Below the pieces are notes generated by a model that was not told the origin of the DNA, ran no database searches, and saw only the letters and a list, made by a program, of their open reading frames with translations. Below are positions 17,378 through 57,046 of a DNA stretch of 64,000 bases, one piece after another (positions within the stretch are counted from its first letter, which is position 1; every line of letters begins with the position of its first letter). A program made the position numbers and the translations under genes. This stretch comes from Isurus oxyrinchus (lineage: Eukaryota), in the NCBI GenBank assembly GCA_026770705.1, contig JANJGN010000071.1, forward strand, positions 744,001-808,000, read 5' to 3'.

Positions 17378-17413
<36 letters not shown>

Positions 17414-18116: not shown

Positions 18117-18398
18117 ATGCTCCACAGAATCTCACATTTACTTCTCTTGAAATGATTAATGCTTCATCGATCAATATAATTGAGGGGAATTCTGCAGTGA
18201 TAATCTGCTCTGTCGAGAGCTTCCCAGCTTCTAACCTGACGTGGCGACATCTTAATGTCCCAATGAACAGAACAAGTTCCAACAATGAGCTGTGGTTGGT
18301 GATTCCTCACGTTACATCCAGGGACACTGGAGACTATCAGTGTGTGGCAGAGAATGAACATGGAGCAGTGGAGGGGTTCATAACCATCACTGTGGAAC
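18117..18398 (+). CDS. Siglec-like inhibitory receptor, C2-set Ig exon (copy 1)
   Basis: ttcttag|AT...GAAC|gtgagt, 282 nt, phase 1/1. Reads APQNLTF..IEGNSAVIICSVESFPASNLTW..DTGDYQCVAENEHG. Confidence 0.88.
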
Positions 18399-19160
18399 GT
18401 GAGTGTACACAGACTTCAACATCACTCACACACACACACTCACACATGCAAAAACACTCATGTGTAGACACAAACATGCACGCTTACACACAAACATACG
18501 TTCAAACACATACACAGAAACACACACAAACTCAACTCANNNNNNNNNNNNNNNNNNNNNNNNNNNNNNNNNNNNNNNNNNNNNNNNNNNNNNNNNNNNN
18601 NNNNNNNNNNNNNNNNNNNNNNNNNNNNNNNNNNNNNNNNNNNNNNNNNNNNNNNNNNNNNNNNNNNNNNNNNNACAGACACGCGCATAAACACAAATAC
18701 AAACTCACGTGCAGAAGTACACACACAAGTGTGAGCTCCCTCTCCTCTCTCAGTTCTGCACTGGAGTCATGGTATCAGCTCCCATTCTGTGCTGAAGGAA
18801 GGTAAACTCCAGATCAGCAAGACCCTGAATTGGATGAGCAACCTCCTGAACAGAGAAATGTAGATTTAGCCCTCAGTGCTCCATCGATCAAATACAATTC
18901 ATTGCCTATCAAGCCCTTGGGGACATCTTGAGAGTGTTAAAGGATGTTTCTTTCATTCTAGAGGGTTAGCAACTCTACTGGTGGGAGGAAGCAACTGCAG
19001 TGTGACAGTTTACATAGGAAGTGTCCATTATAAATATGACAGTAATTTTTCCTGAGGGAAGGTACCTGGAAAAGCATTCCAACATCAGATACAGAGAGAT
19101 GATGCATGGAGTCTTGCTGTGCACTATGCTTGCTCACATTAAAATCTTTATTTCTTTTAG

Positions 19161-19441
19161 ACGCACCCAGAATCTCTCAATTAATTCTCTTGATATGATT
19201 AACGCTTCATCGATCAATATAATTGAGGGGAATTCTGCAGTGATAATCTGCTCTGTCGAGAGCTTCCCAGCTTCTAACCTGACGTGGCGACATCTTAATG
19301 TCCCAATGAACAGAACCAGTTCCAACAATGAGCTGTGGTTGGTGATTCCTCACGTTACATCCAGAGACACTGGAGACTATCAGTGTGTGGCAGAGAATGA
19401 ACATGGAGCAGTGGAGGGGTTCATAACCATCACTGTGGAAC
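19161..19441 (+). pseudogene. C2-set Ig exon (copy 2) with a 1-nt deletion
   Basis: 281 nt. ACGCACC-CAGAAT versus ...CCACAGAAT in paralogues. Read in phase 1 it reaches TGA at the 13th codon. Confidence 0.8.
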
Positions 19442-20262
19442 GTGAGTTANNNNNNNNNNNNNNNNNNNNNNNNNNNNNNNNNNNNNNNNNNNNNNNNNNN
19501 NNNNNNNNNNNNNNNNNNNNNNNNNNNNNNNNNNNNNNNNNNNNNNNNNNNNNNNNNNNNNNNNNNNNNNNNNNNNNNNNNNNNNCACACATGCATAATT
19601 ATCCACACACAGTCATACACATAGAAGCACATACACAGAAAAATACACACCCATCTCAAACACACACACACATTCATGCCCACACATAGACACACACATG
19701 CACATACTCTCACTCATGGACAGACCTAGACACACAGACACATGCGCATGCGCACACACAGACACATGTGTGCATACACACACAAACACATTCACATGTG
19801 CAGAAACACAAACACACAGATACACACACGTGAGTTCCCTGTCCTCTCTCAGTGCCGCACTGGAGTCTTGGTATCAGCTCCGATTCTGTGTTGAAGGAAG
19901 GTAAACTCCAGATCAACAAGACCCTGAATTGGATGAGCAACCTCCTGAACAGAGAATTGTAGATTTACCCCTCAGTGCTCCATCAATCAAATACAATTCA
20001 TTGCCTGTCCAGCCCTTTGCGAAATCCTGAGGATGTGAAAGCAAGCTTCTTTCATTCTAGATGGACAACACCTCTACTGGTGGGAGAATGCAACTGCAGT
20101 GTGACAGTTTACATAGGCAGTGTCCATTAAAAATGTGGCATAAGACGTTATCCTGAGGGAAGTTACCTGGAAATGCATTCAGACATCAGATACAGAGAGA
20201 TGATGCATGGAGTCTTGCTGTGCAATAGGTTTGCTCACATTAAACACTTGATTTGTTTTTAG

Positions 20263-20544
20263 ATGCACCACAGGATCTCTCATTTACTTCGCTTAATATG
20301 ATTTACGCTTCATCAATCAATATAATTGAGGGGAATTCTGCAGTGATAATCTGCTCTGTCGAGAGCTTCCCAGCTTCTAACCTGACGTGGCGACATCTTA
20401 ATGTCCCAATGAACAGAACAAGTTCCAACAATGAGCTGTGGTTGGTGATTCCTCACGTTACATCCATGGACACTGGAGACTATCAGTGTGTGGCAGAGAA
20501 TGAACATGGAGCAGTGGAGGGGTCCATAACCATCACTGTGGAAC
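20263..20544 (+). CDS. Siglec-like inhibitory receptor, C2-set Ig exon (copy 3)
   Basis: tttttag|AT...GAAC|gtgagt, 282 nt, intact, with both Ig cysteines. Confidence 0.88.
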
Positions 20545-21354
20545 GTGAGTGTGGAGATACATTTGTTTGTTTGTTGTCTCCGTGGTCTCTGTGGAGCCAT
20601 TGGGATCGTGTTGTTTTTAATCCAGTTTTCTTCAATCCTCGCTCAGTCCACGTTATCCACACATCCAATTTTTCCTCTCCCTTTCTGTTTTTGCTCTCAG
20701 TTTCTCCTTCAATGGTTGTGAGGACAAGGCTGTCAGGTCTTCGTTTCCAATCTCCGTACTTGATGAACTTTCTCTCTCTAACTGTCCTGAACAACCCTTT
20801 TAATTGCTGAACTTCTCATTCTTTAATTGATAAATATTATATATAAATGTTACATGTTGAAATGCAACTATTGTATTCATAAATTGCTTAGAAATTACTA
20901 AACATTCAACAGCCAGTGAAGCATTATCGAAGTGAGCTCACTGTTGTAATGTAGGAAACGCAGGTACTGATTTGTGCACAGCAAGATCCCGCAAACCACC
21001 GTGTGATAATGACCTGATAGTCGATTATTTCAGTGAGGTTGGTTGTTACATATGTAGAGACTACATACCCTTTAGGGAGGTAAGCATGTCTCGATGTGGA
21101 TGTGACTCCAGTCTCAGACACCAACATGGTTAACTCTTACCTGCCCTCTGAACTGGTCTCCCAGTTTGGGACAAACCAGTGGTTCAGGAGGAAGACCCCC
21201 CACCACCTTCTCAAGGGGAAACTAGGGATGGACAATAAATGTCAGCATTGCCCGAGAATGAGTATTTAAACACTGAGTGAGTGTATCGCTTCTCGAGATA
21301 CATCGGAGCATCATTGTAAACCTGTAGTGCAGTAATTAATGGCTGTTTTTACAG

Positions 21355-21451
21355 GTAGAGACTCCAGTAAATGGACAGTAGGATTGTTCACGGCTGGGAT
21401 CATGTTGAGTGTTTTCCTGGCTGGAATCTTCATCTTCATCTGTGTGAGAAA
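21355..21451 (+). CDS. Transmembrane exon of the inhibitory receptor
   Basis: ttttacag|...|gtaagt, phase 1/2. Reads RDSSKWTVGLFTAGIMLSVFLAGIFIFICVRK, an uncharged TM. Confidence 0.88.
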
Positions 21452-22145
21452 GTAAGTCTGAAGATTTAACTTGATTTTAATATAAACATTTGCTTCAATG
21501 TTCTTTCCTTAAGTCGGTGATTGTTTCCCTTGTGTTAAGCGCTAGATGCCTCTCCGTAACTGGTCTCTTTTGTCCCTTACGATCCAGACAGTGTTTTTCA
21601 TTGCCCGTTATCCAGATGAATAATAATCAGTTGCTGTGATCTGGAAGGTGCTGCCTGAAAGGGCGCTGGAAGCAGATTTAATAGGATCTTTCAAAAGGGG
21701 AATTGGATAAATACTTGAAGGGGGAACATTTGAAGGGCTATGGGGGGAAGAGCAGGGGTGGAGGGGGGGTCAAAGATATGGCGTGTCATTATAATGATAT
21801 TATACCTTAGGCTTATTTATTGTACAAGAAACAAAGCACCAATCGCTCACAGGGATTGGGTGAGAATGTTAATGATTTGTTTATCAAGACTCGGCACGAG
21901 AACAGTTATACATATGGAGAAAGATTGAAGGCATCAGAGCTGTGAGTGTGTGTTCTGCTCAAAGCAAAAGTCAAACTAAGATTGGATCACATGACACACT
22001 TCCATTATAGTGATGTCACGCTGATATCCCTTATTGGAACTAGAGACAGTCCAGTCGTTGGTGTAAGGTTACACTGGGCTCTGTGTCTGTGCTGCACTGA
22101 CTCTCTGCTATATGATAACCACAGTGTGATATTGTGTTATTGCAG

Positions 22146-22227
22146 GAGAAAGACAGCGATGGAGGAGAGAGTTTCAGGGACCAGTGACATTGTATTGACC
22201 CCCAGTCCACTCTCTGTGAAGCACCAG
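22146..22227 (+). CDS. Cytoplasmic exon 1 of the inhibitory receptor
   Basis: ttgcag|G...CAG|gtacag, phase 2/0. Reads RKTAMEERVSGTSDIVLTPSPLSVKHQ and bridges the TM and last exon in frame. Confidence 0.75.
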
Positions 22228-22439
22228 GTACAGGAGCTGTTTACACTCACTCCAAAGCTTCTATCTCAGTGTGTAGACAACACATGTCCCAGATTCCCAG
22301 CCAGGTTACCCACAGATATCTACCTGTGGAGTCAGATATGGCTCAGTAGGTAGCATTGTCTCTCGCTCCCTCCCCCTCTTCCCTCCATCACTCGCTCTTT
22401 GACCAGAAACCTGAACGCAATAATGACAAGGCACCTGAT

Positions 22440-22840
22440 GTCAGTAGTGAGGGAGTGCTGCACTGTCCTAGGGTCTGTGCTGAGGGAGTGCTGGAGTGTC
22501 AGAAGGTCAGTACTGAGGGAGTGTTGCACTGTCAGAGGGTCTGTACTGAGGGAGAGCTAGACTGTCAGAGGGTCAGTACTGAGGGAGTGCTGCGCTGTCA
22601 TAGGGTCAGTACTGAGGGAGTGCTGGACTGTTGGACGGTCAGTACTGAGGGAGTGCTGCACTGTCGGAGGGTCAGTACTGAGGGAGTGCTGCACTGTCGG
22701 ATGGTCAGTACTGAGGACAGTACTGAGTGAGTGCTGCACTGTCAAAGAGTCCATTTTCAAGGGGTGCTGCCTCTTGAAGGGGCAGTTCCGAGGGAGTGCT
22801 GCACTGTCAGCAGAGAGCACTGAGAGAACATTGCAGTGTT
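22440..22840. repeat. 33-bp minisatellite
   Basis: Tandem units seen directly. Confidence 0.9.
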
Positions 22841-23274
22841 CGAGGTGCCTCTTTCAGAATAGTTGTATAATGCTGACCATGTTTACCATCTTATCTGGTC
22901 CCATGGCCACATTTCCAACACTGTAGCAGTGTCGCCCTTCAATAAAATTCCTTCATTGGCGTGAGGTTCTTTGTGTGTCTGTGTTTGTGAATAATGGGGC
23001 ACAAATCTCATGATTGGGATGGTAACATAGGACTTCAAGACTCAGGTCTGCGATAGCGAGAGAGATTACATGATAAATAGAGAGAGAAAGCAAGAGAGAG
23101 AGAGAGAAAGAGAGACAGAGAAAGAGATTGAAAAAAAGGAGACAGAGAAAGAGAGTGAAAAAGAGGGTTAAACCCATTGAGACAAGACTGACAGTAACGA
23201 GGCTGGAGAATAACTTAACCCTATCAGTGCCAGTAAATGATGTGAGGATGTCTTCTGTTTCTATTTCTCTGTAG

Positions 23275-23523
23275 GGTAAACAGAACGTGCTGATTACTGA
23301 GCCCCGGAACACAACCAGAGACACAACTAGCGAGGGGGAGACCCCAGCTCCCCGGGGTCTCTCTGAAGGTCCAGTAGGAGGCGATGTTGGACATGGGAAC
23401 CCCGACAAACCAGACGAGCTTTTCTACGCCAACATCAACTTTTCAAAGCTGCCCGGCGGTGACAGGACTGTGCACAGGAGCGAGGACACGGAATACACAC
23501 AGATCAGGTTCCAGAAAAACTGA
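23275..23523 (+). CDS. Terminal cytoplasmic exon with ITIM and ITSM-like motifs
   Basis: ctctgtag|GGT, phase 0. Ends ...DELFYANINF...DTEYTQIRFQKN*, matching the ELHYASLxF...TEYSEI layout of CD33-related Siglecs. Confidence 0.9.
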   Translation, partial: GKQNVLITEPRNTTRDTTSEGETPAPRGLSEGPVGGDVGHGNPDKPDELFYANINFSKLPGGDRTVHRSEDTEYTQIRFQKN

Positions 23524-23716
23524 GTGTGAAACAGGGAGCGGGGCTGTGGGTTGTGTGCAGCCAACATGGCCAAATAGTAATGAACAGAAATATGATGTTG
23601 CTCAACTTTTTTTTATTGGTTTTAACTGAGCTTTCTGAATGCTGCACCTTTTTCCATGCTGTAAAAGATTGTGAGAAGCTTATGAATTATGTATAATTTT
23701 ACATCTGTTAATACAA

Positions 23717-25785
23717 GGTGAGGTGAGAGTGACTGCCTTTGACATCAAGGCTGCATTTGACCGAGTGTGGCATCTAGGAGCCCGAGCAAAACTGGAGTCA
23801 ATGGGAATCAGGGGTGGTACGAAAGTATAATAATTTGCTTAATATTTTCCTGGTTTGCTGTAAACTAGGTTTATGGGTGTGAGTGTAGATGGGTCTGTCT
23901 GTGTAGTTTAATTACATCTGGAGACAGGTAGACTGCAAGTTTGAGATTATCAAAAGAAGCTAGATGTAGAAATGTACTTGAAATGCTAATGAGAACACAT
24001 GGAGGCTGCCTTAGCATGTAAGGTGTGAAGGGGCTGTTTAGATTTCAAAGGGATGTTGGTCTGTTTAGGACAAGCCCAATAAGCAAAGCTAAGGAGTTTT
24101 TTTTTAATTTTACCCAAACTTCATTGACAATATTGGCAACATGAAAGTTTATATTATGGGAAAGGTACAGTTCCAAAGAATTTACACATCAAAGAGAGAG
24201 AAACATGTATAAAGGAGAATGAAAGGCTATGTTGGGGGCCATGTAAGATCTAACAGGAGTGTGTGAAATAGACTTGAAGAAGCCTCCAGGCATTTGTGCA
24301 TAAGTCTGTTATGTTCAGTAAATAAAGTTGGAGAAACCCATTTAGAATTCCAGTGTCAAGTGTGTGCTGTGTTAACTCGCTGGATTTGTTTTTAATCTAA
24401 AATCTTATTTTGGACTGTTGCCTTAAAAGGGGTATGTAACTGGGAGTCAGGTTAATTAGGAATTTGAGAATATATTTTAGCTGTAACTAACCGTGGTATT
24501 ATGTCTGTGCTTGAAATCTTTTATTTTGTTAATAAATATCTTAATTGAATTTTTAAAATCTCTAAAGGTTGTGGTCAACTCATTACTCCTGAATTCAGTG
24601 CACGCTTCTTGTAATAAATACAAATTGCAAAACTATTGTGATAGCGTGACCAATTTTCCCTTGTGGATTTGGAGCACCAAGCACACATCATCTGCCATGT
24701 CATGTCACAGGGAAAACTCTCCACTCGTTGGATTCATACCAAGTACAAAGGAAGGTGGTTGTGGTTGTTGGAGGTCAGTCATCTCAGTTCCAGGACAGCA
24801 CTGCAGGAGTTGCTCAGTGTAGTGTCCTAGGCCCAACCATCTTCAGCTGCTTCATCAATGACATTCATTCTATCAGATGGTCAGAATTATGGAAGGTCGC
24901 TGATGATTGCACAACGTTCAACATCATTCATGACTCATCAGATGCTGAAGCAGTCCATGTCCAAATGCAGCAAGACCTGGACAATATCCAGGCTTGGCCT
25001 GACAAGTGGCAAGTAACATTCATGCCACACAAGTGCCAGGCAATGACCATTTCCAACCAGAGAGAATATATCCATCTCCCCTTAATGTCCAATATCATCA
25101 CCATTGCTGAATCCCACACTATCAACACTCTGGGGGTTACCAATGACTAGAAACTGAACTGTACTAGCCATATAAACACTGTGACTATAAGAGCAGGCCA
25201 GAGCCTGGGAATCCTGTGGTGAGTAACTCACCTCCTGACTCCCCAAAGCCTGTCCACCAACCTCAAGGCACAGGTCAGAAGTGATGGAATACTCTCCACT
25301 TTTCTAGATGAGTGCAGCTCCAACAACACTCAAGAAGCTCGACACCGTCCAGGACAAAGCAGCCCTGCTTGATTTGCGCCCCGTCCACAAACATTCTCTC
25401 CCTCTACAACTGACGCACAGTGGCAGCAGTGTGTGTACCATCTACAAGATGCAATGCAGGGAGTCACCAAGCCTCCTTAGACAGCACCTTCCAAACACAT
25501 GACCACTACCATCTCGAAGGACAAGGGCAGCAGACACATGGGAACACCACCACCTGGAAGTTCCCCTCCAAGTCACTTACAATCCTGACTTGGAAATATA
25601 TCACCGTTCCTTCACTGTCGCTGGGTCAGAATCCTGCAACACCCTCCCAAACAGTTCTGTGGGTGTACCTACACCACAGGGACTGCAGCAGCTCAAGAAG
25701 GCAGCTCACCCCCATATTCTCAAGGACAATTAGGGATGGGCAATAAATTCTGGCCTCGCCAGTGTCAGTGAATGAATACAAAAAA
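23717..25785 (+). mobile_element. Non-LTR retrotransposon (CR1/L2 group) RT fragment inserted in the 3' UTR
   Basis: AFDIKAAFDRVWH, SVLGPTIFSCFIND, ADDCT and WQVTF.PHKCQ motifs. Interrupted by a solo LTR. Confidence 0.8.
23815..24709 (+). mobile_element. Probable solo LTR nested in the LINE
   Basis: TG...CA termini splitting the LINE motif ggaatcagggg/gggaaaactctcc. Internal TATAAA at ~24208 and AATAAA at ~24531 and ~24613. Confidence 0.65.
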
Positions 25786-26189
25786 GAAGCAATTAAAATG
25801 TCCTGACATTTCTGTACATTTTTATCAAATTAAATACGTACTCTAGTGAATAATTCCATTCTCCAAGGCACCACTTCCTGTTGTCACATGTCCTTCTGAT
25901 TATTTAAATTCCTGTGTCATTGGTAATGGAACATTCCCATGTAAACATGTCACGCTGTAATTACAGCCTCCTGCCAGTGGTGGTGCTTTAGTGTCCTAGT
26001 TTTGCTTCTCAGAGACTGTAGGAGCTGTATACATTGTGTTTACAATATTAGTAACACTCAGGGGTGACCAGGGGGATTCTTTTGGCCAAGTTTACGATGT
26101 TGCTAACATACAATGGCCCCGTGGGATTTTTCCTACTGCGTTTACAAGGTTGAATTGAAGAGATTTTTGAAGTGTCTGGCACAGTTTTA

Positions 26190-26740
26190 TTAAGATCCCC
26201 TCACATCCAATCTGGAGTCACTGGGTTCAGTTCTGGGTCCAGCAGCTTAGGAAGGATATATTGTCCTTGGAGGGGGTGCTGTGCAGTGTCACCAGGATGA
26301 TCCCGGGTCTGAAAGGGTTAAATCCCGAGGACAGGTTGCACAGACCAGGCTTGTGGTCCCTCGAGTCTCGAAGATTAAGGGGTGATCTAATCGAGGGGTT
26401 TAAGTTGATTAAAGGCTTTGTTACGGGCAATAGAGAGAAACTATTTCCTCTGATGGGGTTGAGGTGAGGAGGGTTCAGAACAAGGGAGCAGAACATTAAC
26501 ATTGGAGCCAGGCCGTTCAGGGGTGGTGATGTCAGGAAGCACTTCTTCACACAAAGCGGGGGTGGAAATCTGGAACTCTCTCCCCCAGAAAAAGCTGTCG
26601 AGACTGGGAGGGGTCAATTGTAAATTTCAAAACTGAGATTGGGAGATTGTTGTTGGGTCGGGGGTTAAGGGTTACAGAACCGAGGCGGGTGGATGGGGTT
26701 AAGATACAGATCGGACGTGATCCAATCAAATGTTAGGACT
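26190..26740 (+). mobile_element. CR1 LINE 3' fragment
   Basis: RMIPGLKGL..SLESRRLRGDLIE. A very similar copy lies at 60150-60640. Confidence 0.8.
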
Positions 26741-27779
26741 GTGAGTCTCAGGGAGGCTGGCCCAACCCCAGACGCAGCCGTCTCTGTGACCTGCTTCAAC
26801 CCTGTTGGTCAGCAATGACAACATGAGTTGATGTTAGCCTGATATGTAGTGCATGGAGGGATATTACTCTCCAGGGTGTGTGTGCATCACAGTGCTCATT
26901 CACATGTGTTCCATGTGCACCTACATCAGCTGTGTAGACATACAAGCCTCAATACTGCATCCGGGGAATGTACCATGTCTCACACCTTAGCTGCAGCACG
27001 ACCCTTCCCTTGGAGCTCTGTGTGCTCGAGACATATTTTGTTATTTTTTCCTGCCGTCTCTGTGTCCCCCGACCCGGGAGTGAAAATCCGGCCTTAACTT
27101 CCACTTTCTAGTGTCTGAGACAAGAGGCAATGAGTGAGTGGGCTGACGGTCAGGATTAATGCTGTTAATCTGTGTTTGAGGGGCTGTGAATTCTCGGGGG
27201 ACTAGTTACTCTCTGAGCAGCAGCTTCCAAATCCTTATTTGATGCCGTGCATGTGTGGTTGGAAGATTTTTTTAAAACCACAGGCAGTTCACAGAAACCC
27301 ACAGGAAACCCACAGAGAGACAGTCACTGAGAAAGTCACTCACTCCTTGTGGTTTCACCTTTTAACCACATCCTGTCTGTGTGGCTTAAATGTTAAACAC
27401 AGTGGCCAGACTCAAGGAGGTTTCACTCTGTNNNNNNNNNNNNNNNNNNNNNNNNNNNNNNNNNNNNNNNNNNNNNNNNNNNNNNNNNNNNNNNNNNNNN
27501 NNNNNNNNNNNNNNNNNNNNNNNNNNNNNNNNNNNNNNNNNNNNNNNNNNNNNNNNNNNNNNNNNNNNNNNNNNNNNNNNNNNNNNNNNNNNNNNNNNNN
27601 NNNNNNNNNNNNNNNNNNNNNNNNNNNNNNNNNNNNNNNNNNNNNNNNNNNNNNNNNNNNNNNNNNNNNNNNNNNNNNNNNNACTTACAGACAGACACAA
27701 ACACACACATTCACACACACACACACATTCACTCACACACTCACTCACACACACAAACACACACACAAAGAAAATATCC

Positions 27780-28590
27780 CAATGACAACAAACTGCGATT
27801 AAGAGCTTCCTACAACTTAACTAACAGACCAAAGACATATTGAACTGTCTAAAAGCGACCTGTTTTTCAAAGAAATACAAGATTGTACACAGATCAAAAA
27901 TGGCTGACACAAGTCACCTGATTGCTGATACTGTGAAGTTGATCACTTCTCTGGAAAGGTTCAAATGAATTGCACTGCAGACCTGTTGCATGGAAGTTCA
28001 CGCCTGGGGTGTGTCAGGGTCCACTTCAAATAGAGACACTCTTAAAAGGAAGGCATTAAAATGTAAAGTGCTGGACTTTGATCAGCTGTAGTTCAATCAA
28101 AACATTGGGAACTGCTCACCAAGCGGATAATCATCAACCATTCAAAACCCCCTGTGGAGGATACAATACCCCCGTCTCCTGTTGATTTATATCTTGAAAT
28201 GCATCAAAGGATTCAGAGATGCAAAGATAAAAAAATGGGAATACTTGGTCTATAACAATGAATGCAAAACATGCTGATCGAATTGACTTCAGGGATATAC
28301 AGACAGGAGTTTAACAAATGGTTCTGCCAAGCAGATATAAGAGAAAGGAGGGGAAAAAGAAATATGGCAGTCTTCCACAAACACTGCTGGAAAAGAGCAG
28401 AAATTCTCTCTCTCTCTTTCTGAAGCTAACAGCGCATCTTCAACAAAGTGCAAATCTGAATCAAATCACCACCAGGATGCCACAGGAAACCAATTAACCT
28501 TGAACAGCTGCAAACGTCAACAATCTACACCTCAAAGACAAGCAATTGTATTAATCATATATTCTTTTAAATTTTTATTGGACTCTAACN
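27780..28590 (+). mobile_element. Possible LTR-like element bounded by N-runs
   Basis: A-rich non-coding block with gatataagag followed by a (CT)n run. Termini are not visible. Confidence 0.25.
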
Positions 28591-29719
28591 NNNNNNNNNN
28601 NNNNNNNNNNNNNNNNNNNNNNNNNNNNNNNNNNNNNNNNNNNNNNNNNNNNNNNNNNNNNNNNNNNNNNNNNNNNNNNNNNNNNNNNNNNNNNNNNNNN
28701 NNNNNNNNNNNNNNNNNNNNNNNNNNNNNNNNNNAGTGTGTGTCTGTCTATGTACCCTTGTGAGTGAGTGTGTGTGTGTGTGAACATGTGTGCGTGTGGA
28801 TTGTTGCATCTTTATTATTAACGTTATTTAAAAATAGTGATCACACAAGCCTGGTTTCTAAGGAAATGAAACTGCAAACAATTTACAGTAAAGTGAAACG
28901 TACAGGAATAATCTATTTATTTTGAGCTGATGATATATAATTATACATGAGGCATGTTGCTAATTTCAAATGTCATCTGAAATATGGCAGGTCTGACAGA
29001 GCAGCATTCCCTCAGTGCCCACCCTCTGACAGTGCAGCACTCCCTCAGCACTGACCCTTTGAGAGTGCAGCACTCCTTCAGTACCGACCCTCCGACAGTG
29101 CAGCACTCCCTCAGTACTTACCCTCTGACAGTGCAGCACGCCCTCAGTACTGATCCTCTGACAGTGCAGCACTCCCTCACCACTCCCTCACTGGGGAGAA
29201 TCTACCTGGGTTTTGAGCTGAAATCATGAGCAGGTCTTAAAACATTCTGTATCAGAGAGAGAGAGAGTGTCTGAGAGACAGAGAGAGACCGAGAGACTGT
29301 GTGAGAGAGGAAAAGAGATAGAGAGAGTGTGTGCATGTGTGAGGGAGAGTGTTTGTATATGAGGGAGAGAGTGTGCATGTGATAATGTGTGAGAGAGAGT
29401 GTGTGAGAGAGAGTGTGTGTGTGACAGAGAGAGTTTGTGTGTGTGAGAGAGAGTGTGTGTGAGAGAGCGTGTGTTTGTGACAGAGAGTGTGTGTGTGTGC
29501 GAGGGAGAGAAAGAGGGAGACAGCAGAAGAGCGAGATGAAGAGAAATGTTAAATGTTTGAGAGAGAGAGAATGTGTGTGTCTGTGAGAGAGAGTGTGTGT
29601 GTGTGAGAGAGAGTGTGTGCTTGACAGAAAGGGAGATTGTGTTAGTTTTAGGGAAAGTGTGTGAGTGTGTGAGAGAGTGTTTGTGTCTGAGAGAGAGAGA
29701 GAATGTATTTGAGGGAGGG

Positions 29720-30661
29720 AGACAGAGAGAATGTGTGTGTGAGAGAGAGAGATAGAGCAGAAGAGTGTGATAGAGAGAGATTGTGTTTGTTAGAGAGAGA
29801 AAGTGTGTGTGTGAGAGAGAGAGAGATAGAGCAGAAGAGTGTGATAGAGAGAGATTGTGAGTGTTAGAGAGAGAATGTGTGTGTGTGTGAGAGAGATAGA
29901 GCAGAAGATTGTGATAGAGAGAGATTGTGTGTGTTAGAGAGAGAAGGTGTGTGTGTGAGAGAGAGAGAGATAGAGCAGAAGAGTGTGATAGAGAGAGATT
30001 GTGAGTGTTAGAGAGAGAATGTGTGTGTGTGAGAGAGAGAGATAGAGCAGAAGAGTGTGATAGAGAGAGATTGTGAGTGTTAGAGAGAGAATGTGTGTGT
30101 GTGAGAGAGAGAGATAGAGCAGAAGAGTGTGATAGAGAGAGATTGCGAGCGTTAGAGAGAGAATGTGTGTGTGTGAGAGAGAGAGAGATAGAGCAGAAGA
30201 GTGTGATAGAGAGAGATTGTGAGTGTTAGAGAGAGAATGTGTGTGTGTGAGAGAGAGAGAGAGAGCAGAAGAGTGTGATAGAGAGAGATTGTGTTTGTTA
30301 GAGAGAGAATGTGTGTGTGTGAGAGAGAGATAGAGCAGAAGAGTGTGATAGAGAGAGATTGTGAATGTTAGAGAGAGAAAGTGTGTGTGAGAGAGAGAGA
30401 GATAGAGCAGAAGAGTGTGATAGAGAGAGATTGTGAGTGTTAGAGAGAGAATGTGTGTGTGAGAGAGAGATAGAGCAGAAGAGTGTGATAGAGAGAGATT
30501 GTGAGTGTTAGAGAGAGAATGTGTGTGTGTGAGAGAGAGAGAGAGATCGAGCAGAGGAGTGTTTTAGAGAGAGATTGTGTTTGTTAGAGAGAGAATGTGT
30601 GTGTGTGAGAGAGAGATAGAGCAGAAGAGTGTGATAGAGATTGTGAGTGTTAGAGAGAGAA

Positions 30662-30692
<31 letters not shown>

Positions 30693-31060
30693 GCAGAAGA
30701 GTGCGATAGAGAGAGATTGTGAGTGTTAGAGAGAGAATGTGTGTGTGTGAGAGAGAGAGAGAGAGATAGAGCAGAAGAGTGTGATAGAGAGAGATTGTGA
30801 GTGTTAGAGAGAGAATGTGTGTGTGTGTGAGAGAGAGAGATAGAGCAGAAGAGTGTGATAGAGAGAGATTGTGTTTGTTAGAGAGAGAATGTGTGTGTGA
30901 GAGGGAGAGATAGAGCAGAAGAGTGCGATAGAGAGAGATTGTGAGTGTTAGAGAGAGAATGTGAGTGTGAGAGAGAGAGATAGAGCAGAAGAGTGCGATA
31001 GAGAGAGATTGTGAGTGTTAGAGAGAGAGATAGAGCAGAAGAGTGTGATAGATAGAGATT
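29720..31060. repeat. Compound GA/GT satellite (~62-bp unit)
   Basis: Reverse complement of the array at 11620-13300. Confidence 0.9.
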
Positions 31061-31329
31061 GTGAGGACTAAACTCACTGAGAGAAAAAGCTGGACACCCA
31101 GCACAGGGAGTGAGGGAACAATGAATTTTTGCCGTGTTTGGTGAATCGGTTTGCGATGTCCCTTCTCAATCTCTCCTTCCTTGTCTTGACATTAGTTTAT
31201 TCCCTGGGGCTGTTTAACTCACTGAAAGGTGCCATTTAAACACAAGTTGTTGTTTGAGGAAGAAACGCTGGGGACAATTTATGAAAAAGTCTCTGTCTTT
31301 ATCATTTCCATTTAGATGAGGAACTGAAG

Positions 31330-32497
31330 ATGGGAGAGGTCGGGCTGATATTGATCTTCATCAGCTTGCTGCAAGGTACAAATTCATTACTGATCGGAAC
31401 TCAGGGAATTGGATTCTTTCCTGGAGTGAGGAAGTGAACATTTAATTTTAGAGAACAGGGTTAGTGATCACACAGAGAGTGAGTGATTAGCGAGTCAGAG
31501 AATGTAGCAAAAGCAAAAGTCTCATACGGACTCGAAACACCAACTCTGTTTCTCTCTCCACAGATGCTGTCAGACCCGCTGAGTTTTTCCAGCATTTTCT
31601 GTTTGTGCATCAGAGAGCTTGTTTCAATAGGAATGACAGTGCATTTATATAGCACCTTTAATGCAGTAAAACATCCTTATTGCTTCACAGGATTCCCCCA
31701 CAAGGGGTAACATCCCCTCAGCATCGACCCTGTCAAACCCCCCACCACCTCAGAATCTTATATGTTTCAATAAGATCACCTCTCATTCTTCTAAACTCCA
31801 ATGGATACAGGGCCCAACCTGCTCAACATTTCCTCATAAGACAAACCCCCTTCATCCCAGGAATCAGCCCAGTGATCCTCCTCTGAGCTGCCTCCAATGC
31901 AGAGTCTATCCCTCCCTAAGTAAGGAGACCAGAACTGTACACACTGCTCCTGATACAATCTCACCAACGCCCTGTGCAGCTGTTGCAAGACTTCCCTCCT
32001 TTTATACTCCATCCCTTTGCAATAAAGGCCAACATTCCACTTGCCTTCCTCATTCCGTGCTGTTCTTGAATGCTGACTTTCTGTGATTCATGTACAAGGA
32101 CACCCAGATCCCTCTGTACCGCATTCTGCTGCCTCTCTCCATTGAAGTAATATTCTGCTTTTTGATGTCCTGTCTCTTCCCTTGTTGCCTTTCAGGAGTG
32201 ACGTCAGAGGGATGGTCTATGAAGGTGCTGCCTCGGAGGGCCATCAGCAGCTCTTGTGTGGTTATTCCGTGTAGCTTTGACTTTCCTTCCCACTCTTACA
32301 CAGCACTGCACGGAGCTTGGTATAAATATTGGTATAGATGGAAATATACCATCACATACACCAAAGATCCCAACTATGGGATGGCCACATTCGTGGGACG
32401 TGCTAAAATAATCGCCGACTTGGAAGGGAAGAATTGTTTGGTGAGGATTGACAGTCTCAGAGCTGAAGACAGTGACGTGTATTGCACCCAATTCTAA
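31330..32497 (+). pseudogene. Siglec-like leader (31330-31375) and V-set exon (32196-~32482), truncated by Gypsy sequence
   Basis: Leader MGEVGLILIFISLLQG|gt, acceptor tttcag| at 32196, V-set to DSDVY followed by CTQF*. Confidence 0.85.
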
Positions 32498-32884: not shown

Positions 32885-32923
<39 letters not shown>

Positions 32924-33845: not shown

Positions 33846-33869
33846 TCACAACAATTTTACAGAACAGAA

Positions 33870-38295: not shown

Positions 38296-38366
38296 AGCAA
38301 GAAGCTCCTCTAGTTACAAACCAAAGCATCAAAGCAGAGCCAGAAGATCAGAAGAGACAGGCAGAG

Positions 38367-40364: not shown

Positions 40365-40679
40365 GTAGGTGGAAATTCATTCCTTATTTTAAGGTTTCTC
40401 CCTGCTCGTTTCTTCCACAGAAAGTTTTCTGATTTCAAGCTGATTTCAGTGGCAGTCTGTCTCGGTTATACTCAGGAGGCAGGTTTGAAATCGAGCCCCC
40501 CCCCCCCCTTTTTTTGCAAAGCTGGGAAGAGGCAATTCCAAGGAAGTGAACATATCCCCACAGGAATTTTAAATGTAACCCACGCCGGGAATAGTGAGAG
40601 GGAGACTGATCCAGCCTGGGAGTGGGTTAAAGAGAGGCTGGGAGTCGAGAGTCGGAGAGAGGGATGGAATGGGGGAGGG

Positions 40680-41105
40680 AGGGTCAGTACTGAGGGAGTG
40701 CTGCACAGTCGGAGGGTCAGTACTGAGGGAGTGCTGCATTGTCAGAGGGTTAGTACTGAGGGAGTGCTGCACTGTCAGAGGGTCAGTACTGAGGGAGTGC
40801 TGCATTGTCAGAGGGTCAGTCTTGAGGGAGTGCTGCACAGTCGAAGGGTCAGTACCGGCGGGGGGATGCACAGTTGGAGGGTCAGTGCTGAGGGAGTGCA
40901 GCATTGTCAGAGGGTCAGTTTTGAGGGAGTGTTGCACAGTCGGAGGGTCAGTACTGAGGGAGTGTTGCATTGTCAGAGGGTCAGTCTTGAGGGAGTGCTG
41001 CACTGTTGGAGGGTCAGTACTGAGGGTGTGCTACACTGTCAGAGGGTCAGTACTGAGGGAGTGCTGCACAGTCAGAGGGTCAGTACTGAGAGGGTGCTGC
41101 ATTGT
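40680..41105. repeat. 33-bp minisatellite
   Basis: Tandem units; they account for the long ORF 40089-41108. Confidence 0.9.
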
Positions 41106-42654
41106 TGAAGGCGCTGTCTTTCAGATAAGACATTAAACTGGGGCAACCAATCTGCCCTCTCAGGTGGATGTAGAGGATTCCATGGGTTATGTCCACTTTC
41201 CTGGGGCAAACATTTATCCCTCAACTGACATTGGTAAAAAACTGAAAATGGTCACCATTACTGAGACTAGCTTCGCATTCCAGAAGTCACATCCAGTCAT
41301 GGACAATTAAACTGGAGGAGGAGGCTCCACAAATATCCCCATCCTCAATGATGGAGGAGTCCAGCACGCCAGTGCAAAAGACAAGACTGAAGCATGCGCA
41401 ACAAAATGTATCAATCAATTAAATTTATTGATTAATCGAATTGAAATTCCTCCAGCTGCCGTGGTGGGATTTGAACCCGTGCCTTCAAAGCATTCACCTG
41501 GGCCTCTGGATCACTGGCCTAGTGCCATTCCCATTGTGCGACTGTCTGCTATCATCATGGCTCTTTCACATCGATGTGGAAGTCCTGATAACAGAAGCAT
41601 TGGACGAGGTACAGAAAGGTGACAAATCAGGAGCTCCATTGCTCAATATGAACGGATAATAAAGATAAATGAACATAAACCTTCCAGTCGCTAATTAGGG
41701 AGTCACTGTGGAGCCCATGAGTCCCTCGCAGCGCTATTGCAACCTTCTGGATCCCCAGTAGGGGACTCGGGGTGCAGCTGTGTCTTCCTCATCATTTGGA
41801 AAAGCCGGAATTGTTCGGGTGCCCCTTCAAACAGGCCGAAGATGCAGTGGGTGATGTCTCCCACAGGCCCTGGGAGACCTCCCCTGCCAATTTGTTTTGT
41901 AGCTTATTCTTCAACTGCGACATTGGATCGGCTTGAAAAAGGGTGAGGCTGAGGCAATACCACCAGGTAAGCTTCTATCCCCTCACACGTCACTCCCCCC
42001 CACCCCCGTAACAATCACAGTCCCTCCCATCGTGCTGGAGGAGCATAATGTGCACATTCCCCTCCTTCCAATCAGTCTCCTCCCTTCCTCTCTAATCCTT
42101 GATCTTATTGTGTTCGGGGTTGACATCCCAGTCCTCCTCCCTAGACTGTCTGATGTTGACATCCCAATGCCCCATGTAGACCTGACCTCTCTCCAACTAG
42201 AGGCCCATTGTACTGTGACTTACAGAGACCACCGGCCCCCCTCGATTCCCACCCCCACCCCTACTCTCTATATTACCTGCTCCCCACTGACAGGCTGCAG
42301 ATGCCTCCCCTGACTGGGATTGTGCCACCTGCGGCCTAGTATCAAGCCACCCACCCCCAGGACCGACGTGTGTGAGGGACTGACCACGTCCTGCACACCA
42401 TGCTGGGCACCACCAACCCAGGACTGCCAGGCTGTCCCCACCACACTGGACTGGGACTAGAATAGGCGTGCCAAGCACAGCTCTCTAAATCGTGGCGCAG
42501 ACCCACAGCACTCGCAATGTTTTGTGGCCCGAATCCTTGCTGAGGAACTGCCCAGCACTAAAAGCAAAACAACTGCAGATGCTGGAAATCCAAAACAGAA
42601 ACAGAAACAGAAATACCTGGAAAAACTCAGCAGGTCTGGCAGCATCGGCAGAGA

Positions 42655-44465
42655 AGTACTGAGGTAGTGCGGCACTGTCGGAGGTTCAGTACTGAGGGAG
42701 TGCTGCACTGTCGGAGGGTCTGAACTGAGGGAGTGCTGCACTGTCGGAGGCTCTGAACTGAGGGAGTGCTGCACTGTCGGAGGCTCTGAAATGAGGGAGT
42801 GCTGCACTGTCGGAGGGTTTGAACTGAGGGAGTGCTGCACTGTCGGAGGGTCTGAACTGAGGGAGTGCTGCACTGTTGGAGGGTCTGAAATGAGGGAGTG
42901 CTGCACTGATGGAGGGTCTGAACTGAGAGAGTGCTGCACTGTCGGAGGTTCTGAACTGAGGGAGTGCTGCACTGTCTGAGGGTTTGGACTGAGGGAGTGC
43001 TGCACAGTCGGAGGGTCTGAACTGAGGGAGTGCTGCACTGTCGGAGGGTTTGAACTGAGGGAGTGCTGCATTGTCGGAGGGTCTGATCTGAAGGAGTGCT
43101 GCACTGTAGGAGGGTCTGAACTGAGGGAGTGCTGCGCTGTTGGAGGGTCAGTACTGAGGGAGTGCTGCGCTGTCTAAAGAACATTGTACAAATTGCACAA
43201 AATTGCATCTGATGCCTGTGTCTCATGCTAACATGAAGTTCATGCACACAACAGGAATATTTCTCGCTGTTTCTCGACAGCAAGACAGCTTTGATATCAC
43301 ACCAGCCACTGGCAAGTTTGTGCAGCTACAATGTGACATGTTTACATTGGAAATTTCTATTATAAAGATGGACAGAGGAATTCATCTGATTGGAAAACGT
43401 GACAACATGAAGTAATGTCTTTGAGCCAAGAATTTTGCAGCAAAATAAGAATTTTAATCTTTAAATATCTACAGAACAGCCTGAACTTTTTAATCACTTG
43501 TGTTAATCAATGTAATTTTATTCATAACCCAAATGCTTCTTACAATCTATCGCAGCATGAAAAAGGTGCAGCATTCAGAAAGCACATTCCAATCAGAGAA
43601 CAGAGTTTAGCAACGTCACATTTCTGTTCATTCCTATTTGACCATGTTGGCTGCACACAGCCAGACAATGCCGTGGTTATTATCTGTCCACACAGCAGGA
43701 CTGGGGAGCACCAGGTATAAGGAGAAGTTTCAGCTTGCTGAGGAGAAGAAGGAGAATCTTTCGTTCCAGGATTCTCTCCGTACATTAAGAAGCAGGCATG
43801 CCGATGTTTCATTGCACTCTGTCTGCTGATGGGAGTCCGCTTGGAAATTGCTGTTTGTGCTGATGGAAAGAATAAGCTTTTCATAAATCGAAGGATTGAG
43901 AACAAACACAGGGAGGTTATGCTGAACATTTATAAAGCTCTGCTTAGGTCACAACTAGAGTATTGTGTCCAGTTCTGGTCTCCTCACTTTGGGAAGGAAG
44001 TGAGGGTCCTTGAGAGGGTGGGGAGGAGATTGAGCAGAATGGGTCCAGGGATGAGGGATTTTAGCTACAAGGTTGGGTTGGAGAAGCTGGGGTTGTTCTC
44101 CTTGGAGCAAAGGAGATTGAGGGGGGATCTGATCGAGGTGTACAAGATGATGATGGGTTTAGATAAGGCAGACAAAGAGAAGCTGTTGCCATTAGCTGAT
44201 GGGACAAGGACTGGGGGACACAGATTGAAGATTTTGGGCAGAGGGGGGATGTGAGGAGGAACTTTTTTACACAGCGAGTGGTAATGAGCTGGAACTCGCT
44301 GCCTACGAGGATGGTGGAAGCGGAGACGATGAACAATTTCAAAAGGAAATTGGATGGACACTTGAGGGGAAATAAACTTGCAGGGATACGGGGATAGAGC
44401 GGGGGAATGGGACTGAGTGGATTGCTCTACAGAGAGACAACATGGACTCAATGGGCTGAATGGTC
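42655..44465. repeat. Left arm of a second inverted duplication (partner ~62600-64000): minisatellite, receptor 3'-UTR-like block and CR1
   Basis: Mirror ORFs 43829-44254 vs 62818-63243 and 43415-43720 vs 63352-63657. Confidence 0.9.
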
Positions 44466-44470
44466 TCCCA
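43865..44470 (+). mobile_element. CR1 LINE 3' fragment
   Basis: YKALLRSQLEYCVQFWSPH...LGLFSLEQRRLRGDLIEVYK. Confidence 0.88.
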
Positions 44471-44598
44471 CTGTCCTGGAATGCCTCTCTGATACGAAGG
44501 TGATTCTAACCAGGACACTGACCAGTTTCATTACACTTAACCCAACATCACACGTTATTTGTCCGCACTGACTGACCAGATTGTTGCTGTACAAAGCT

Positions 44599-44738
44599 TC
44601 AAACAGTCTGTCGACTTCCTTTCACTGTTTGTCTCTCCCAGACACAGACTCCAGCGATAGTGATAACCACAGCCACAAGGAATATCACAGCTCGTATTCC
44701 CAGGATCAGGATCACGTGCAGAATCTCTCCTCCACTGT
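44599..44738 (-). CDS. Terminal TM exon of an activating-type receptor (Arg in TM, short tail without Tyr)
   Basis: gttctctag|AC, phase 1. Reads SGGEILHVILILGIRAVIFLVAVVITIAGVCVWERQTVKGSRQTV*. The exon itself is intact but the upstream exons are disabled. Confidence 0.8.
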
Positions 44739-46401
44739 CTAGAGAACACACAGAAAGAAATCATCACTGACTCTCCGCTTTCAATCTCTCACTCTGGCTG
44801 AACAATCAAGCTTCATATCACTGCAACATTTGCTGTAATATTGACCCATCCACTGGGATTCAATGTGGAATGAATGTTTTCATTGTAAACACTCTAAGAG
44901 TGGACAATCGGAACTTTCCCCTTAGCGTGGAACATTGGTGAGAATGGATCATTGTGCTGTTGGACTCCCAGTCCAATGTTTCTCTCCATCACTGTGTACA
45001 GGATTGTGCTGTAGAAAATTCTGGAAACGTTTAGTGCAGGGTTGAAATCCATCTCGGACGTGTGTGCGAATCGGGCAGGATCGAGATGGACTCCCCCACG
45101 GACTTACACCCCCCGCTTAATAAACAGTTCCAATCTTTACCCAGAGAGAGGGGAGAATGTGGAACTCGATCCCACAAGGAGTGGTTGAGGTGAACAGTAT
45201 CGATGTATTTAAGGGGCAGGAGGGTCGGTAACCAGAGGGACACAGATTGACGAACCGGAGGGGGAGATGAGGAGAATTTGTTTTGACAGAGCGAGTTGTT
45301 GTGATCTGGAAGGTGCTGCCTGAAAGGGCGGTGGAAGCAGATTCAATAGGAACTTTCAAAAGGGAAATTGGATAAACACTTGAAGGAGGAAGATGGGGGC
45401 AAAGTGGAGTGGTGGTTAGTGGATCTGATTGGATAGAACATTGAAAGACCTGGCACAGGCACAATGGGCTGAATGGCCTCCTCCTGTGCTGTATCATTCT
45501 CCGCTTCCATGATCTCTCCCCCAGTCAGTAACCACTCCAGATCCCTCTTGAAGGCAACAGAGAAACAGGAACTACCACACCCACTGACAGCACATTCCCG
45601 AGGATCACTACTCTCTGGGAAAAGATGAACTCCCCAACATCCAGCCTATTCCTGCTTCCCGGAGAGTGTAAACCCTTCAGGGAGGCACTGAGGAAGTTTT
45701 CAATAAAATGAATTATCAAATCTACCGTTTGAGAAATAATTGAATTCCGATGAACTCCCAGCTTGTGTAGCAAACTGGGAAGTAGATTTGCTTGAAAAGC
45801 TGGGAAACACAAGGATTAAGTGCTACAATGCCACCACTGGTGGGAGGCTGTAACTACAGTGTGACGTTTACATAGGCAGTCATCACTATAAACAGGGGCT
45901 TTGGACATAATGGTCACGGAAATAGTGAGAACAGGATGTAAGCTTTTCATCAGCAGGAATTCTCTTACTAAACCTCTCCACCTCTCTCTTACTCTCAGAT
46001 TCACAAAAAAATCACATAATCAGATAAAGAGGAGTTGGGACTATTTATTCGTCAAAGGGTTAGGTTTCAGGTAGCTCCTTAAAGGGAGAGAGAGAGTTGG
46101 AGAAGCAAAGAGTATCTATGAGTGCCTCTATGCATCTGAGTGTTTGTACGAGTAATTTCCATATTCTTCCATAAATATGAATGGGAACACAAATCCCAGA
46201 ATTCAGCCCACGCTCCAGTGCAGTGCTGAGGGAGGTCAGGTAACCCATGAGGGAGTCTTGTGCTAGTGTGTTTGTTTGTGAGTGTGTCTTTGTGTGTGGT
46301 CATATATGTGTGTCTGCACGTGTCTATTTAGGTCTGTACGTTTGAGGGTGTTTGTGTAGTATTCGAATCTGAGAGAGATGTTGAAGTCTGTGTACACTCA
46401 C

Positions 46402-46555
46402 ATTCCACAGTAATGGTTATGAACCCCTCCACTGCTCCATGTTCATTCTCTGCCACACACTGATAGTCTCCAGTGTCCCTGGATGTAACGTGAGGAATCA
46501 CCAACCACAGCTCATTGTTGGAACTTCTTCTGTTCATTGGGACATTAAGATGTCA
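46402..46555 (-). pseudogene. 5'-truncated C2-set exon
   Basis: HLNVPMNRRSSNNELWLVIPHVTSRDTGDYQCVAENEHG..TVE|gtgagt. The first half is replaced by unrelated sequence, and intron homology to ~56262 resumes at ~46740. Confidence 0.85.
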
Positions 46556-47077
46556 GGGAGGGAATCAAGAACCCCGTATGCACAATTACCAACAGAAAGT
46601 GAACAACAATTTATACTTAATGGGAAGACAGTGCTGATTGGTTGGCAAGTGGTCTCTGATAGGTGGAGGTGTTGCCGTGGAGAATGGTGTGTGCGAGATG
46701 TAAAGTTTAGACAGCTTGTCTCTTCATTCAGCAATAATCAAATAAAGATCAATTAACTTCTATCGACTGTGAAGCATTTTGAGAGGTCTGAGAATGTGGA
46801 TACTGAGAACAGGCTGCACTGTCAGAGGGTCAGCGCTGAGGGAGTGCTGATGTAGAATGAAAGATGTCGGTACAGTTAATGCTTTTCATCATTGATATTA
46901 AAGTGATTTTTAGAGGTTGCTTTAGGACTGAACTGGAAGCTATCACCAGGTTATTGAGAATCAGACAGTGTGTTATAATAAGCTGTGTTTTGTGTTATTA
47001 TGTAAACGTCACAGTTTGTGTTATTTCCCATTGAGTGTTGGATGTGAATTGTTGAGTAATTATAACACAGCACTTAC

Positions 47078-47451
47078 CAGAAACGTCAAGCTGGGTTACA
47101 GGATACTAGCTGTAACTATTCCTGCTGTCAAACTCTATTCTGAAAAAATAAGGTCCTGCATCTTCCCGTCTGATGTTGTTTATAATCAGGGAACAGTCGC
47201 CATCTTTCTGGTCTCCAGACAGCCGGGTCCGATGGCGGAATCTTTGATCCCTGTGACTGTGACCCTCGGAGTGAAAGGCTATAGACCATTTAGGCTGTGG
47301 GTTCCCATCTATTCCTTTCAACCAGATTCCGCACGTGATCTCCCTACGAAATTTGATAAGTAACTGGAATGACATGGAATCGGTACACATGAACCTTCCT
47401 GTGCTGTCACCTCTCGTGGAGTGTCACCTTTCCACTCTTGTGACAGTCCAA
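47078..47451 (-). pseudogene. Siglec V-set exon with a frameshift and a nonsense codon
   Basis: EVTAQEGSCVPIPCH../GIWLK..FRHRTRLSGDQKDGDCSLIINNIRREDAGPYFFRIEFD. The essential Arg is present, but there is a frameshift at ~47330 and TAG at 47108-47106. Splice sites ccccag| and |gtaagt. Confidence 0.9.
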
Positions 47452-48154
47452 CTGGGGAGAGAAATATCAACATTTGACTCTGGATAGTTTGTAGATCCAC
47501 TAGACTCGATATCCACCCCCTCCATCACTGGGGCACAGTGGCTGCAGTGTGGACCATCTACAGGACACACAAGGAACTCCCCAAGGTTTCACAACGGATG
47601 GAACAGAACCCTGGACACAGGAGTGGACAATTTCATTCTACATTGGCTCATGGTCCTCAGGACCCTGTGTAGTGAAGCCAGTCTTCCACCCAACACAGTG
47701 TCCACAAGATACACAGGGAAACTGTGTAAATATCTCATCTCTCAACACTGAATGGGCTGAGCTTCAGTTTAACTTTCAGTATTGTTAAATTTCCTTATTG
47801 TGGTTGCTATGGTGAAACTGTGCAGGAAGTGTGAGGGCTGGACTCTCTGTCTATTCTCACTGCAGCTGTGATGTGGTCGTGGTGATTCTCAGTAAAATGA
47901 AACCCTCTGATCTCCTCAATCCCCGAGGTTTAGGGAGTGAATTCCAGAGCTCAGGCCCCAGGCAGCTGAAGGCACGGCCACCAGTATTGGAGTGATGGGA
48001 ATTGGGGGATGGTCAAGAGGCCGGAATTGGAGTAACACAGAGATCTGGGAAGTTGTTTGGGTGAGTTGCAGGAGGTTACAGAGATAAAGAGATAAGAATG
48101 ATCTTTTACAAAGACTGTTAAACATAAATCTGTCCAAGCTGACGATGATATTAC

Positions 48155-48215
48155 CTTGGAGAAGTGACAAGAGGAAGTAGACTTCCCGATCATTGTCCAC
48201 TCCCAGATATTCCAT
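48155..48215 (-). pseudogene. Leader exon of the activating-type gene
   Basis: ..VYFLLSLLQG|gtaata, phase 1. The natural-looking ATG (MIGK) is 1 nt out of frame; an upstream ATG at 48215 is in frame but gives an acidic N-terminus. Confidence 0.65.
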
Positions 48216-57045: not shown

Positions 57046-57046
57046 G

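Follow-up and report, generated by a model that had tools for sequence, protein, structure and literature searches.

We analysed 64,000 nucleotides (nt) of the shark Isurus oxyrinchus (assembly GCA_026770705.1, contig JANJGN010000071.1, positions 744,001 to 808,000; hereafter the window, numbered from its first letter) that carry exons of Siglec-type receptors. Most probably, the window is a fragment of a large, heavily rearranged shark Siglec-type receptor cluster that is built of interchangeable exon modules, in which an inhibitory-type and an activating-type ending are intact and the activating-type gene on the minus strand is a pseudogene. The modules of the family are two kinds of variable (V) exon, a second immunoglobulin (Ig) domain, a highly conserved and repeatable membrane-proximal C2 exon, and three alternative endings. 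The first ending, of inhibitory type, is an uncharged membrane span followed by a tail with an ITIM (immunoreceptor tyrosine-based inhibitory motif) and an ITSM (immunoreceptor tyrosine-based switch motif). The second is another uncharged span with a tail finishing DDLYANC..SVYGNL, and the third, of activating type, is a membrane span that has an arginine buried in it and is followed by a tail of 12 residues. Both opposite modules occur in the window, the ITIM tail on the plus strand (gene X) and the charged span with its short tail on the minus strand. In the searches, to which the exons were sent singly, the closest relatives of the window exons were great white and basking shark proteins.

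An earlier note on this stretch had proposed a paired inhibitory/activating Siglec system in cartilaginous fish. At the level of the family the proposal stands, given the gene models and the V-domain tree of other sharks. It is not supported for the two genes in the window, where gene X is without a V exon and one of its C2 exons is frameshifted. Nor does the window contain two genes with near-identical ligand-binding domains: since gene X has no V exon, the generic C2 exon alone is common to both. Gene X and the minus-strand gene with the arginine (Arg) exon are relics in a cluster under reshuffling, and no working pair can be demonstrated.

Inhibitory and activating endings in the window

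Gene X, as far as it is present, opens with three C2 exons on the plus strand. Copy 1 (18117–18398; 282 nt, phase 1-1) is open, is recognized by Pfam as Ig_3/I-set with an E value of about 1e-12, and shares 88–94% identity with great white and basking shark proteins. Copy 2 (19161–19441) retains its GTGAGT donor and has only 281 nt owing to a 1-nt deletion near the 5′ end, and copy 3 (20263–20544; 282 nt) is open again. These are followed by an uncharged transmembrane exon, WTVGLFTAGIMLSVFLAGIFIFICV / RDSSKWTVGLFTAGIMLSVFLAGIFIFICVRK, at 21355–21451 (phase 1 in, phase 2 out; 82% identity to P0086), by a cytoplasmic exon, RKTAMEERVSGTSDIVLTPSPLSVKHQ, at 22146–22227 (phase 2 in, phase 0 out), which matches the corresponding stretch of P0018 and P0073, and by the last exon at 23275–23523, which is open over 23275–23520 and then reaches a stop. 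This single open exon holds the ITIM, LFYANI, at 23419–23436 and the ITSM, TEYTQI, at 23488–23505, spaced by 17 residues, with TEYTQI lying 5 residues before the C-terminus. A proximal ITIM and a distal ITSM near the C-terminus is a feature of CD33-related Siglec tails. Pfam returned no match for the tail exon. Its two motifs are collinear with ELKYATLDFSK..VEYSEV in a Siglec-like protein of a frog (E value of 0.005 for the pair), and the exon is 88–90% identical to P0018 and P0073 and to the C-terminal ends of Siglec-like proteins annotated in the great white and basking sharks. The splice phases are compatible (1-1, 1-2, 2-0, 0), such that the exons join in frame apart from the 281-nt copy 2, and when translated together they match Siglec-like proteins of the great white and basking sharks at 82–90% over the C-terminal third.

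Protein-guided tblastn with 112 shark relatives found no leader, V or second-domain exon upstream of gene X on the plus strand of the window. Gene X therefore has an intact inhibitory ending behind three C2 exons only, and is hence an incomplete gene.

The minus strand tells the complementary story. Its Arg-bearing transmembrane exon (44599–44738) starts at 44738 after ttctctag, a good acceptor, in phase 1, and is open throughout. The arginine lies in the span VILILGIRAVIFLV at 44715–44674, and the exon ends in ERQTVKGSRQTV and a TGA at 44601–44599, yielding a 12-residue tail with no tyrosine. The inhibitory and switch-like motifs, the uncharged span, the arginine span and the tyrosine-free 12-residue tail had all been claimed in the earlier note, and each was found in its place. 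Nor are the motif-bearing exons products of chance, because the tail exon of gene X resembles great white and basking shark proteins at the 88–90% given above, and the Arg exon has 80–85% identity to catshark models.

Upstream of the Arg exon, the minus-strand gene is broken in every exon. The leader exon, MEYLGVDNDREVYFLLSLLQ, at 48155–48217, is joined from 48155 to 47451 with GT..AG ends by RNA-type contigs in three of the four runs, from two organisms, that were aligned to the window; its usual MIGKSYFLL reading (MIGKSYFLLSLLQ) is 1 nt out of frame. The type-1 Siglec V exon (47078–47451) keeps the YFFRIEF arginine motif. Its length of 374 nt, however, is not a multiple of three: the frame jumps near 47340–47350, between CHSSYLSNF and GIWLKG, and an in-frame TAG stands at 47108–47106, just ahead of the conserved YPVTQLDVS end. 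The C2 exon survives as a 3′ half (46402–46554; 153 of 282 nt) that retains the donor, its 5′ half and acceptor having been replaced by unrelated repeat-rich DNA. Because leader, V and C2 exons before the intact Arg exon are all broken, we regard the activating-type gene as a pseudogene, as had been suggested beforehand; the four defects are the 374-nt V exon, the in-frame TAG, the halved C2 exon and the leader 1 nt off frame.

The nearly identical C2 exons of the two genes had been taken as a mark of the pair. The near-identity is real over the retained 3′ part: in the last 159 nt of the minus-strand copy, 6 unrelated bases at the 5′ edge included, 149–151 of the 159 positions match the plus-strand copies. 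It cannot extend to the whole exon, of which the minus-strand copy keeps the 153 nt just mentioned. The window contains five C2 copies with 92–99% identity over their common part. The alignable tract comprises the exon and about 20 nt on each side, and between gene X and a third gene, gene Y (described below), the synonymous divergence of the C2 exon is 0.08. This pattern fits homogenisation limited to the exon. As evidence for a pair it falls away, since the exon is a family-wide module that occurs also in gene Y, with its other V type and other tail, and thus does not mark gene X and the Arg-exon gene as partners.

The RNA-type contigs bear on the state of the minus-strand gene in several ways. 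Besides showing the leader-to-V splice of the pseudogene, they cover the Arg exon, in the four runs, at a summed depth 7–20 times, or more, that of the adjoining upstream intron (contig depth being a poor measure of expression), and some of them end at the Arg-exon acceptor. The Arg exon thus seems to be transcribed. In addition, there are contigs (X1, X2) in which the end of a V-type exon is followed by a V-type exon start (47078 and 47450). Such joints fit paralogous transcripts that encode V domains in tandem, two or more of them; catshark models have two to four.

A number of points weigh against our reading of the window. The RNA nature of the contigs is guessed, and at 90% likeness they cannot separate paralogues from the window copy. 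Other contigs run past the Arg-exon acceptor into the intron, and the joints listed (15 of 68) included none that links the half C2 exon with the Arg exon. The single-base frameshifts, four or five in the window and thus high in number, could be assembly errors. Three gaps at 13.5–14.6 kb could conceal 5′ exons of gene X. Finally, the shark gene models used for comparison are automatic predictions.

Could the activating-type gene then be functional, its frameshift, stop and half exon being assembly errors or bypassed by splicing? The open Arg exon with its good acceptor and ample coverage by RNA-type contigs, the leader-to-V splice in three runs, and the several other 1-nt frame breaks in the window, which might indicate an indel-prone assembly, would all be in keeping with this. 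We nevertheless consider it very improbable. The frameshift in the V exon is probably no assembly slip, because a contig from a separate run (X2 no. 14; 47302–47430) is identical to the window over the frameshifted stretch. In run X2, the sole contig covering base 47108, the first letter of the TAG, agrees with the window, with the proviso that nearby letters differ and that it may represent a paralogue or another allele. Furthermore, the C2 exon has lost its 5′ half structurally and not through an indel, and the V exon sits on a long terminal branch of the tree described below. We therefore keep to the pseudogene.

The assembly around gene X deserves similar scrutiny. Four runs of N lie within 18117–48215. 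The run at 18540–18674 begins 141 nt beyond the first C2 exon of gene X and that at 19450–19585 begins 8 nt beyond the second, while those at 27432–27682 and 28590–28734 are intergenic; all four are intronic or intergenic, and none cuts an exon. Together with its unaligned flanks, the gap at 18540–18674 measures 237 nt, equal to the matching part of a neighbouring 1.1-kb repeat unit. Because continuity across the gaps cannot be proved, the count of three C2 exons stays provisional. Long CA-rich and other simple-repeat tracts occupy introns and spacers at 17336–17690, 19599–19900, 11490–12930 and 29200–31170, and the N runs lie within such tracts.

Conceivably, the real genome holds gene X as a complete inhibitory Siglec, with 5′ exons in the 13.5–14.6 kb gaps or displaced by a scaffolding error around two inverted arms (A and B, described below) that lie on both sides of it. 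Indeed, three N runs exactly separate arm A from gene X, whose 3′ half is fully spliceable and conserved. Yet inclusion of the frameshifted C2 copy 2 in a transcript would shift the reading frame, and the arms are 87–96% identical and thus old duplicates, not a haplotype artefact. A wrongly oriented block 1–13528 was considered as an explanation for the absent V exon and rejected: flipping it yields no coherent gene, as a hepcidin-like gene and about 10 kb would still separate the C2 exons from a truncated type-2 V exon. Taken together, a complete gene X appears unlikely, and we treat it as the incomplete gene described above.

Siglec identity and opposite endings in other sharks

Whether these receptors are Siglecs at all hinges on the V domains, which the earlier note placed within the Siglecs. 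The searches bear this out. For both V exon types, the best PDB match is sialoadhesin. For basking shark P0040, which among intact relatives is nearest to the type-1 V exon, the top ten PDB matches are all Siglecs, with MAG (2e-45) and Siglec-8 (1e-35) followed by CD33, Siglec-10 and Siglec-5; the first non-Siglec match stands at 3e-17, and contactin-2 trails the Siglecs by more than four orders of magnitude. The Siglec cysteine pattern, with cysteines on the B and E strands, none on the F strand and an extra IPC for the link to domain 2, is present and aligned with sialoadhesin (GSCVPIPC and GDCSLII in the exon labelled V47; SSCVVIPC and KNCLVRI in V32). In type 1, YFFRIEF aligns to YNFRFE of sialoadhesin and contains the conserved F-strand arginine, which in Siglecs binds the sialic acid carboxylate. 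In type 2, this arginine is missing in the relatives (YYFYVD), and the window copies end before the site.

The kind of Siglec is less readily told. Against three-domain chains, P0040 scores alike with MAG (125.9 bits) and Siglec-8 (126.3 bits), which does not separate CD33-like from MAG-like. The tail is of the CD33-related kind, whereas on the outer domains MAG equals Siglec-8 and CD33 in score.

By analogy with known receptors, the V domain of intact inhibitory members would bind a sialylated ligand, and phosphorylation of the tail tyrosines would recruit SH2 phosphatases. In intact activating members, the membrane arginine would pair with an acidic residue of an adaptor carrying an immunoreceptor tyrosine-based activation motif, such as DAP12 or FcR-gamma, and signalling would run through Syk-type kinases.

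Intact carriers of the Arg exon are found in other sharks. A HMMER search with the exon against 1.84 billion representatives returned 10 matches, 9 of which have the cassette and are all from sharks; the seven cassette proteins looked up by name were shark without exception (7/7). The tenth match, P0009, a protein of 2439 residues with seven short matches, looks spurious. The carriers include RefSeq models named CD33-like, Siglec-12, Siglec-13 and sialoadhesin-like, plus CD22-like and other Ig receptors whose outer domains are unrelated, and a word search added two Scyliorhinus canicula models (Siglec-13 and Siglec-14), each composed of V, C2 and Arg exon. The proposed system depended on the Arg exon being joined to Siglec Ig domains, and RefSeq models of this build exist for Scyliorhinus torazame, S. 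canicula, Chiloscyllium punctatum and Rhincodon typus. For the great white and the basking shark, the searches retrieved no model that carries the Arg exon.

Beyond the presence of the exon, opposite endings are found on closely similar receptors. The outer domains of Arg-exon proteins and of proteins with ITIM/ITSM tails are 84–96% identical: P0014 matches P0025/P0026 at 95.7% over 376 residues, and P0112 matches P0013/P0015/P0016 at 84%. In a quick tree of 85 V domains, Arg-exon proteins adjoin inhibitory ones from their own species or genus. At least seven changes of ending are needed on this tree, at least three of them forced by well-supported branches. In this unanchored tree, the broken V exon of the window, read through with X at its two breaks, is placed with sequences of the great white and basking sharks and has a long terminal branch.

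The cassette reaches further than the Siglecs. In P0004, P0005, P0007 and P0010, from other sharks, the ILGIRA.. cassette ends CD22-like receptors that have four to eight Ig domains as well as small receptors belonging to another Ig family. Because it closes members of both, the Arg exon seems to have been shuffled between families. Separately, Siglec-like models of toads (P0124, P0126 and P0133) have a lysine or arginine inside the membrane span, which suggests that charged-span Siglecs may extend beyond mammals and sharks.

One may ask whether the Arg exon makes an activating receptor, since its arginine could serve some other partner, surface retention or shedding, or the short-tailed products could be decoys. 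Placed about a third into the span, the arginine does not discriminate DAP12 from FcR-gamma, and the cassette has no detectable relative outside sharks, both of which leave room for such roles. On the other hand, ILGIRA is invariant in four shark genera and across several families of receptor, despite differing outer domains, and adaptor-coupled receptors are as a standard built with a short tyrosine-free tail and a basic residue buried in the span (PMC4042635, for Siglec-14). We consequently find a role other than activation rather improbable, and retain the activating type for this ending.

Gene Y, the inverted arms and a hepcidin-like neighbour

The remainder of the window adds further pieces of the same cluster. 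Gene Y, a type-2 Siglec-like gene on the minus strand (52481–62527), is 87–96% identical to great white shark P0060 and P0032. Its approximate exons are C2a (62252–62527), C2b (61226–61450), C2c (55974–56255), the second uncharged transmembrane exon (54625–54723), a tail exon (53085–53264) and a last exon (52481–52600). It belongs to a second type, with a different second domain, membrane span and tail (DDLYANCEF..SVYGNL). Compared with P0032 and P0060, the frame of the last exon changes between KKDEKVLEMKSNRG and PDTDDDLYANCEFAKDSVYGNL, before DDLYANCEF..SVYGNL, so that as written the tyrosine motifs would be lost. A motif scan downstream of gene Y found no LxYAxI tail, tblastn with proteins giving a different tail type, and the window contains no V exon of gene Y.

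The V type that is joined to gene Y-like exons in great white shark models does occur in the window, as two truncated copies within inverted arms. The arms form a 10-kb inverted duplication (2949–12993 versus 40683–29724; the identity is that given above). Arm B carries the truncated type-2 V exon at 32087–32494 on the plus strand, with its leader at 31330–31386, and arm A the mirror copy at 10189–10596 on the minus strand. Both copies end after DSDVY, at the start of a retroelement-like frame, where the relatives go on with YFYVDAEGY. Each arm holds the truncated type-2 leader and V exon, the retroelement-like frame, long satellite arrays with a 37-nt period and a hepcidin-like copy.

A second inverted pair, resembling long interspersed nuclear elements (LINEs), lies just downstream of the Arg exon (43088–44474) and just upstream of the Ig exons of gene Y (62598–63997). 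Its members are 94% identical, and the pair is a possible substrate for inversion. Pfam returned no match for the retroelement-like and LINE-like open frames at 32.4–34.1, 43.7–44.3 and 57.2–58.6 kb.

Amid the Siglec exons also lies a hepcidin-like gene (760–5083). In human 19q13.1, the conserved Siglecs MAG and CD22 adjoin HAMP in the order HAMP-USF2-MAG-CD22 (PMC4453067; reference list of PMC10029227). The hepcidin neighbour recalls this mammalian region and may reveal the ancestral Siglec locus of the cluster; as a lead, it hints at this region and not at the cluster of CD33-related genes.

Known paired Siglecs and the shark family

Several parallels and differences were found between the shark family and the human pairs Siglec-5/14 and Siglec-11/16 (PMC4042635, PMC5701461). 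Both have nearly the same V and C2 domains on opposite endings, an ITIM and a distal ITIM-like motif versus a basic span and short tail; both have homogenised outer exons; and in both the activating partner frequently exists as a null allele or pseudogene. Unlike in the human pairs, however, the shark Arg cassette has no detectable sequence relative outside sharks and is common to CD22-like and other Ig receptors, one C2 exon occurs in 2–6 repeats in the shark genes, whose V domains sometimes number two to four, and neither partner is intact at the window locus. Given that no relative of the cassette was detected outside sharks and that shark CD22-like and other Ig receptors use it, an origin independent of the mammalian pairs is plausible.

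The closest counterparts are RefSeq shark models, for example XP_072326180.1 (‘Siglec-12’) and XP_072325011.1 (‘CD33-like’) of Scyliorhinus torazame, ‘Siglec-14 isoform X2’ of S. canicula, and XP_072409577.1 (‘Siglec-13’) of Chiloscyllium punctatum, which are made of the same exon modules as the window (Arg exon 74–85%, type-1 V 70–83% and C2 exon up to 98% identical). Their reading frames are open, whereas the window copy is broken. Thus, the design of a shark Siglec with an Arg exon is already present in automatic annotation, without comment, and no paper on shark Siglec pairs was found in the open-access literature. To our knowledge, papers describe paired on/off Siglecs in mammals only.

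A further comparison is with MAG (Siglec-4) and CD22 (Siglec-2). MAG is the best solved-structure match of P0040, and the hepcidin-like neighbour would agree with the HAMP-USF2-MAG-CD22 region. MAG, however, has five fixed domains and no ITIM/ITSM pair, whereas the shark genes form a multi-copy, fast-changing immune-type family with a tail like that of CD33-related Siglecs. Open-access reviews (PMC9630641) count Siglec-1, -2, -4 and -15 as the ancient Siglecs and describe the CD33-related ones as variable between species. We tentatively propose, as a possibility short of an even chance, that cartilaginous fishes built their own activating partners by shuffling one Arg exon among Siglec-like, CD22-like and other Ig genes, and that the CD33-type tail was already present at an ancestral jawed-vertebrate HAMP-MAG-CD22 locus. 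If true, the ‘CD33-related’ design would be far older than its usual tetrapod or mammalian origin.

Paired Siglecs in mammals are read as a host response to pathogens that exploit inhibitory Siglecs. A shark family of the same design would show that this solution to an arms race has arisen repeatedly, with its own Arg cassette and with decaying activating copies as in humans. The locus analysed here, while not the best example of an intact pair, contributes the decay side of the picture, and the shark family as a whole would offer an old, independent system in which the arms-race idea can be tested.

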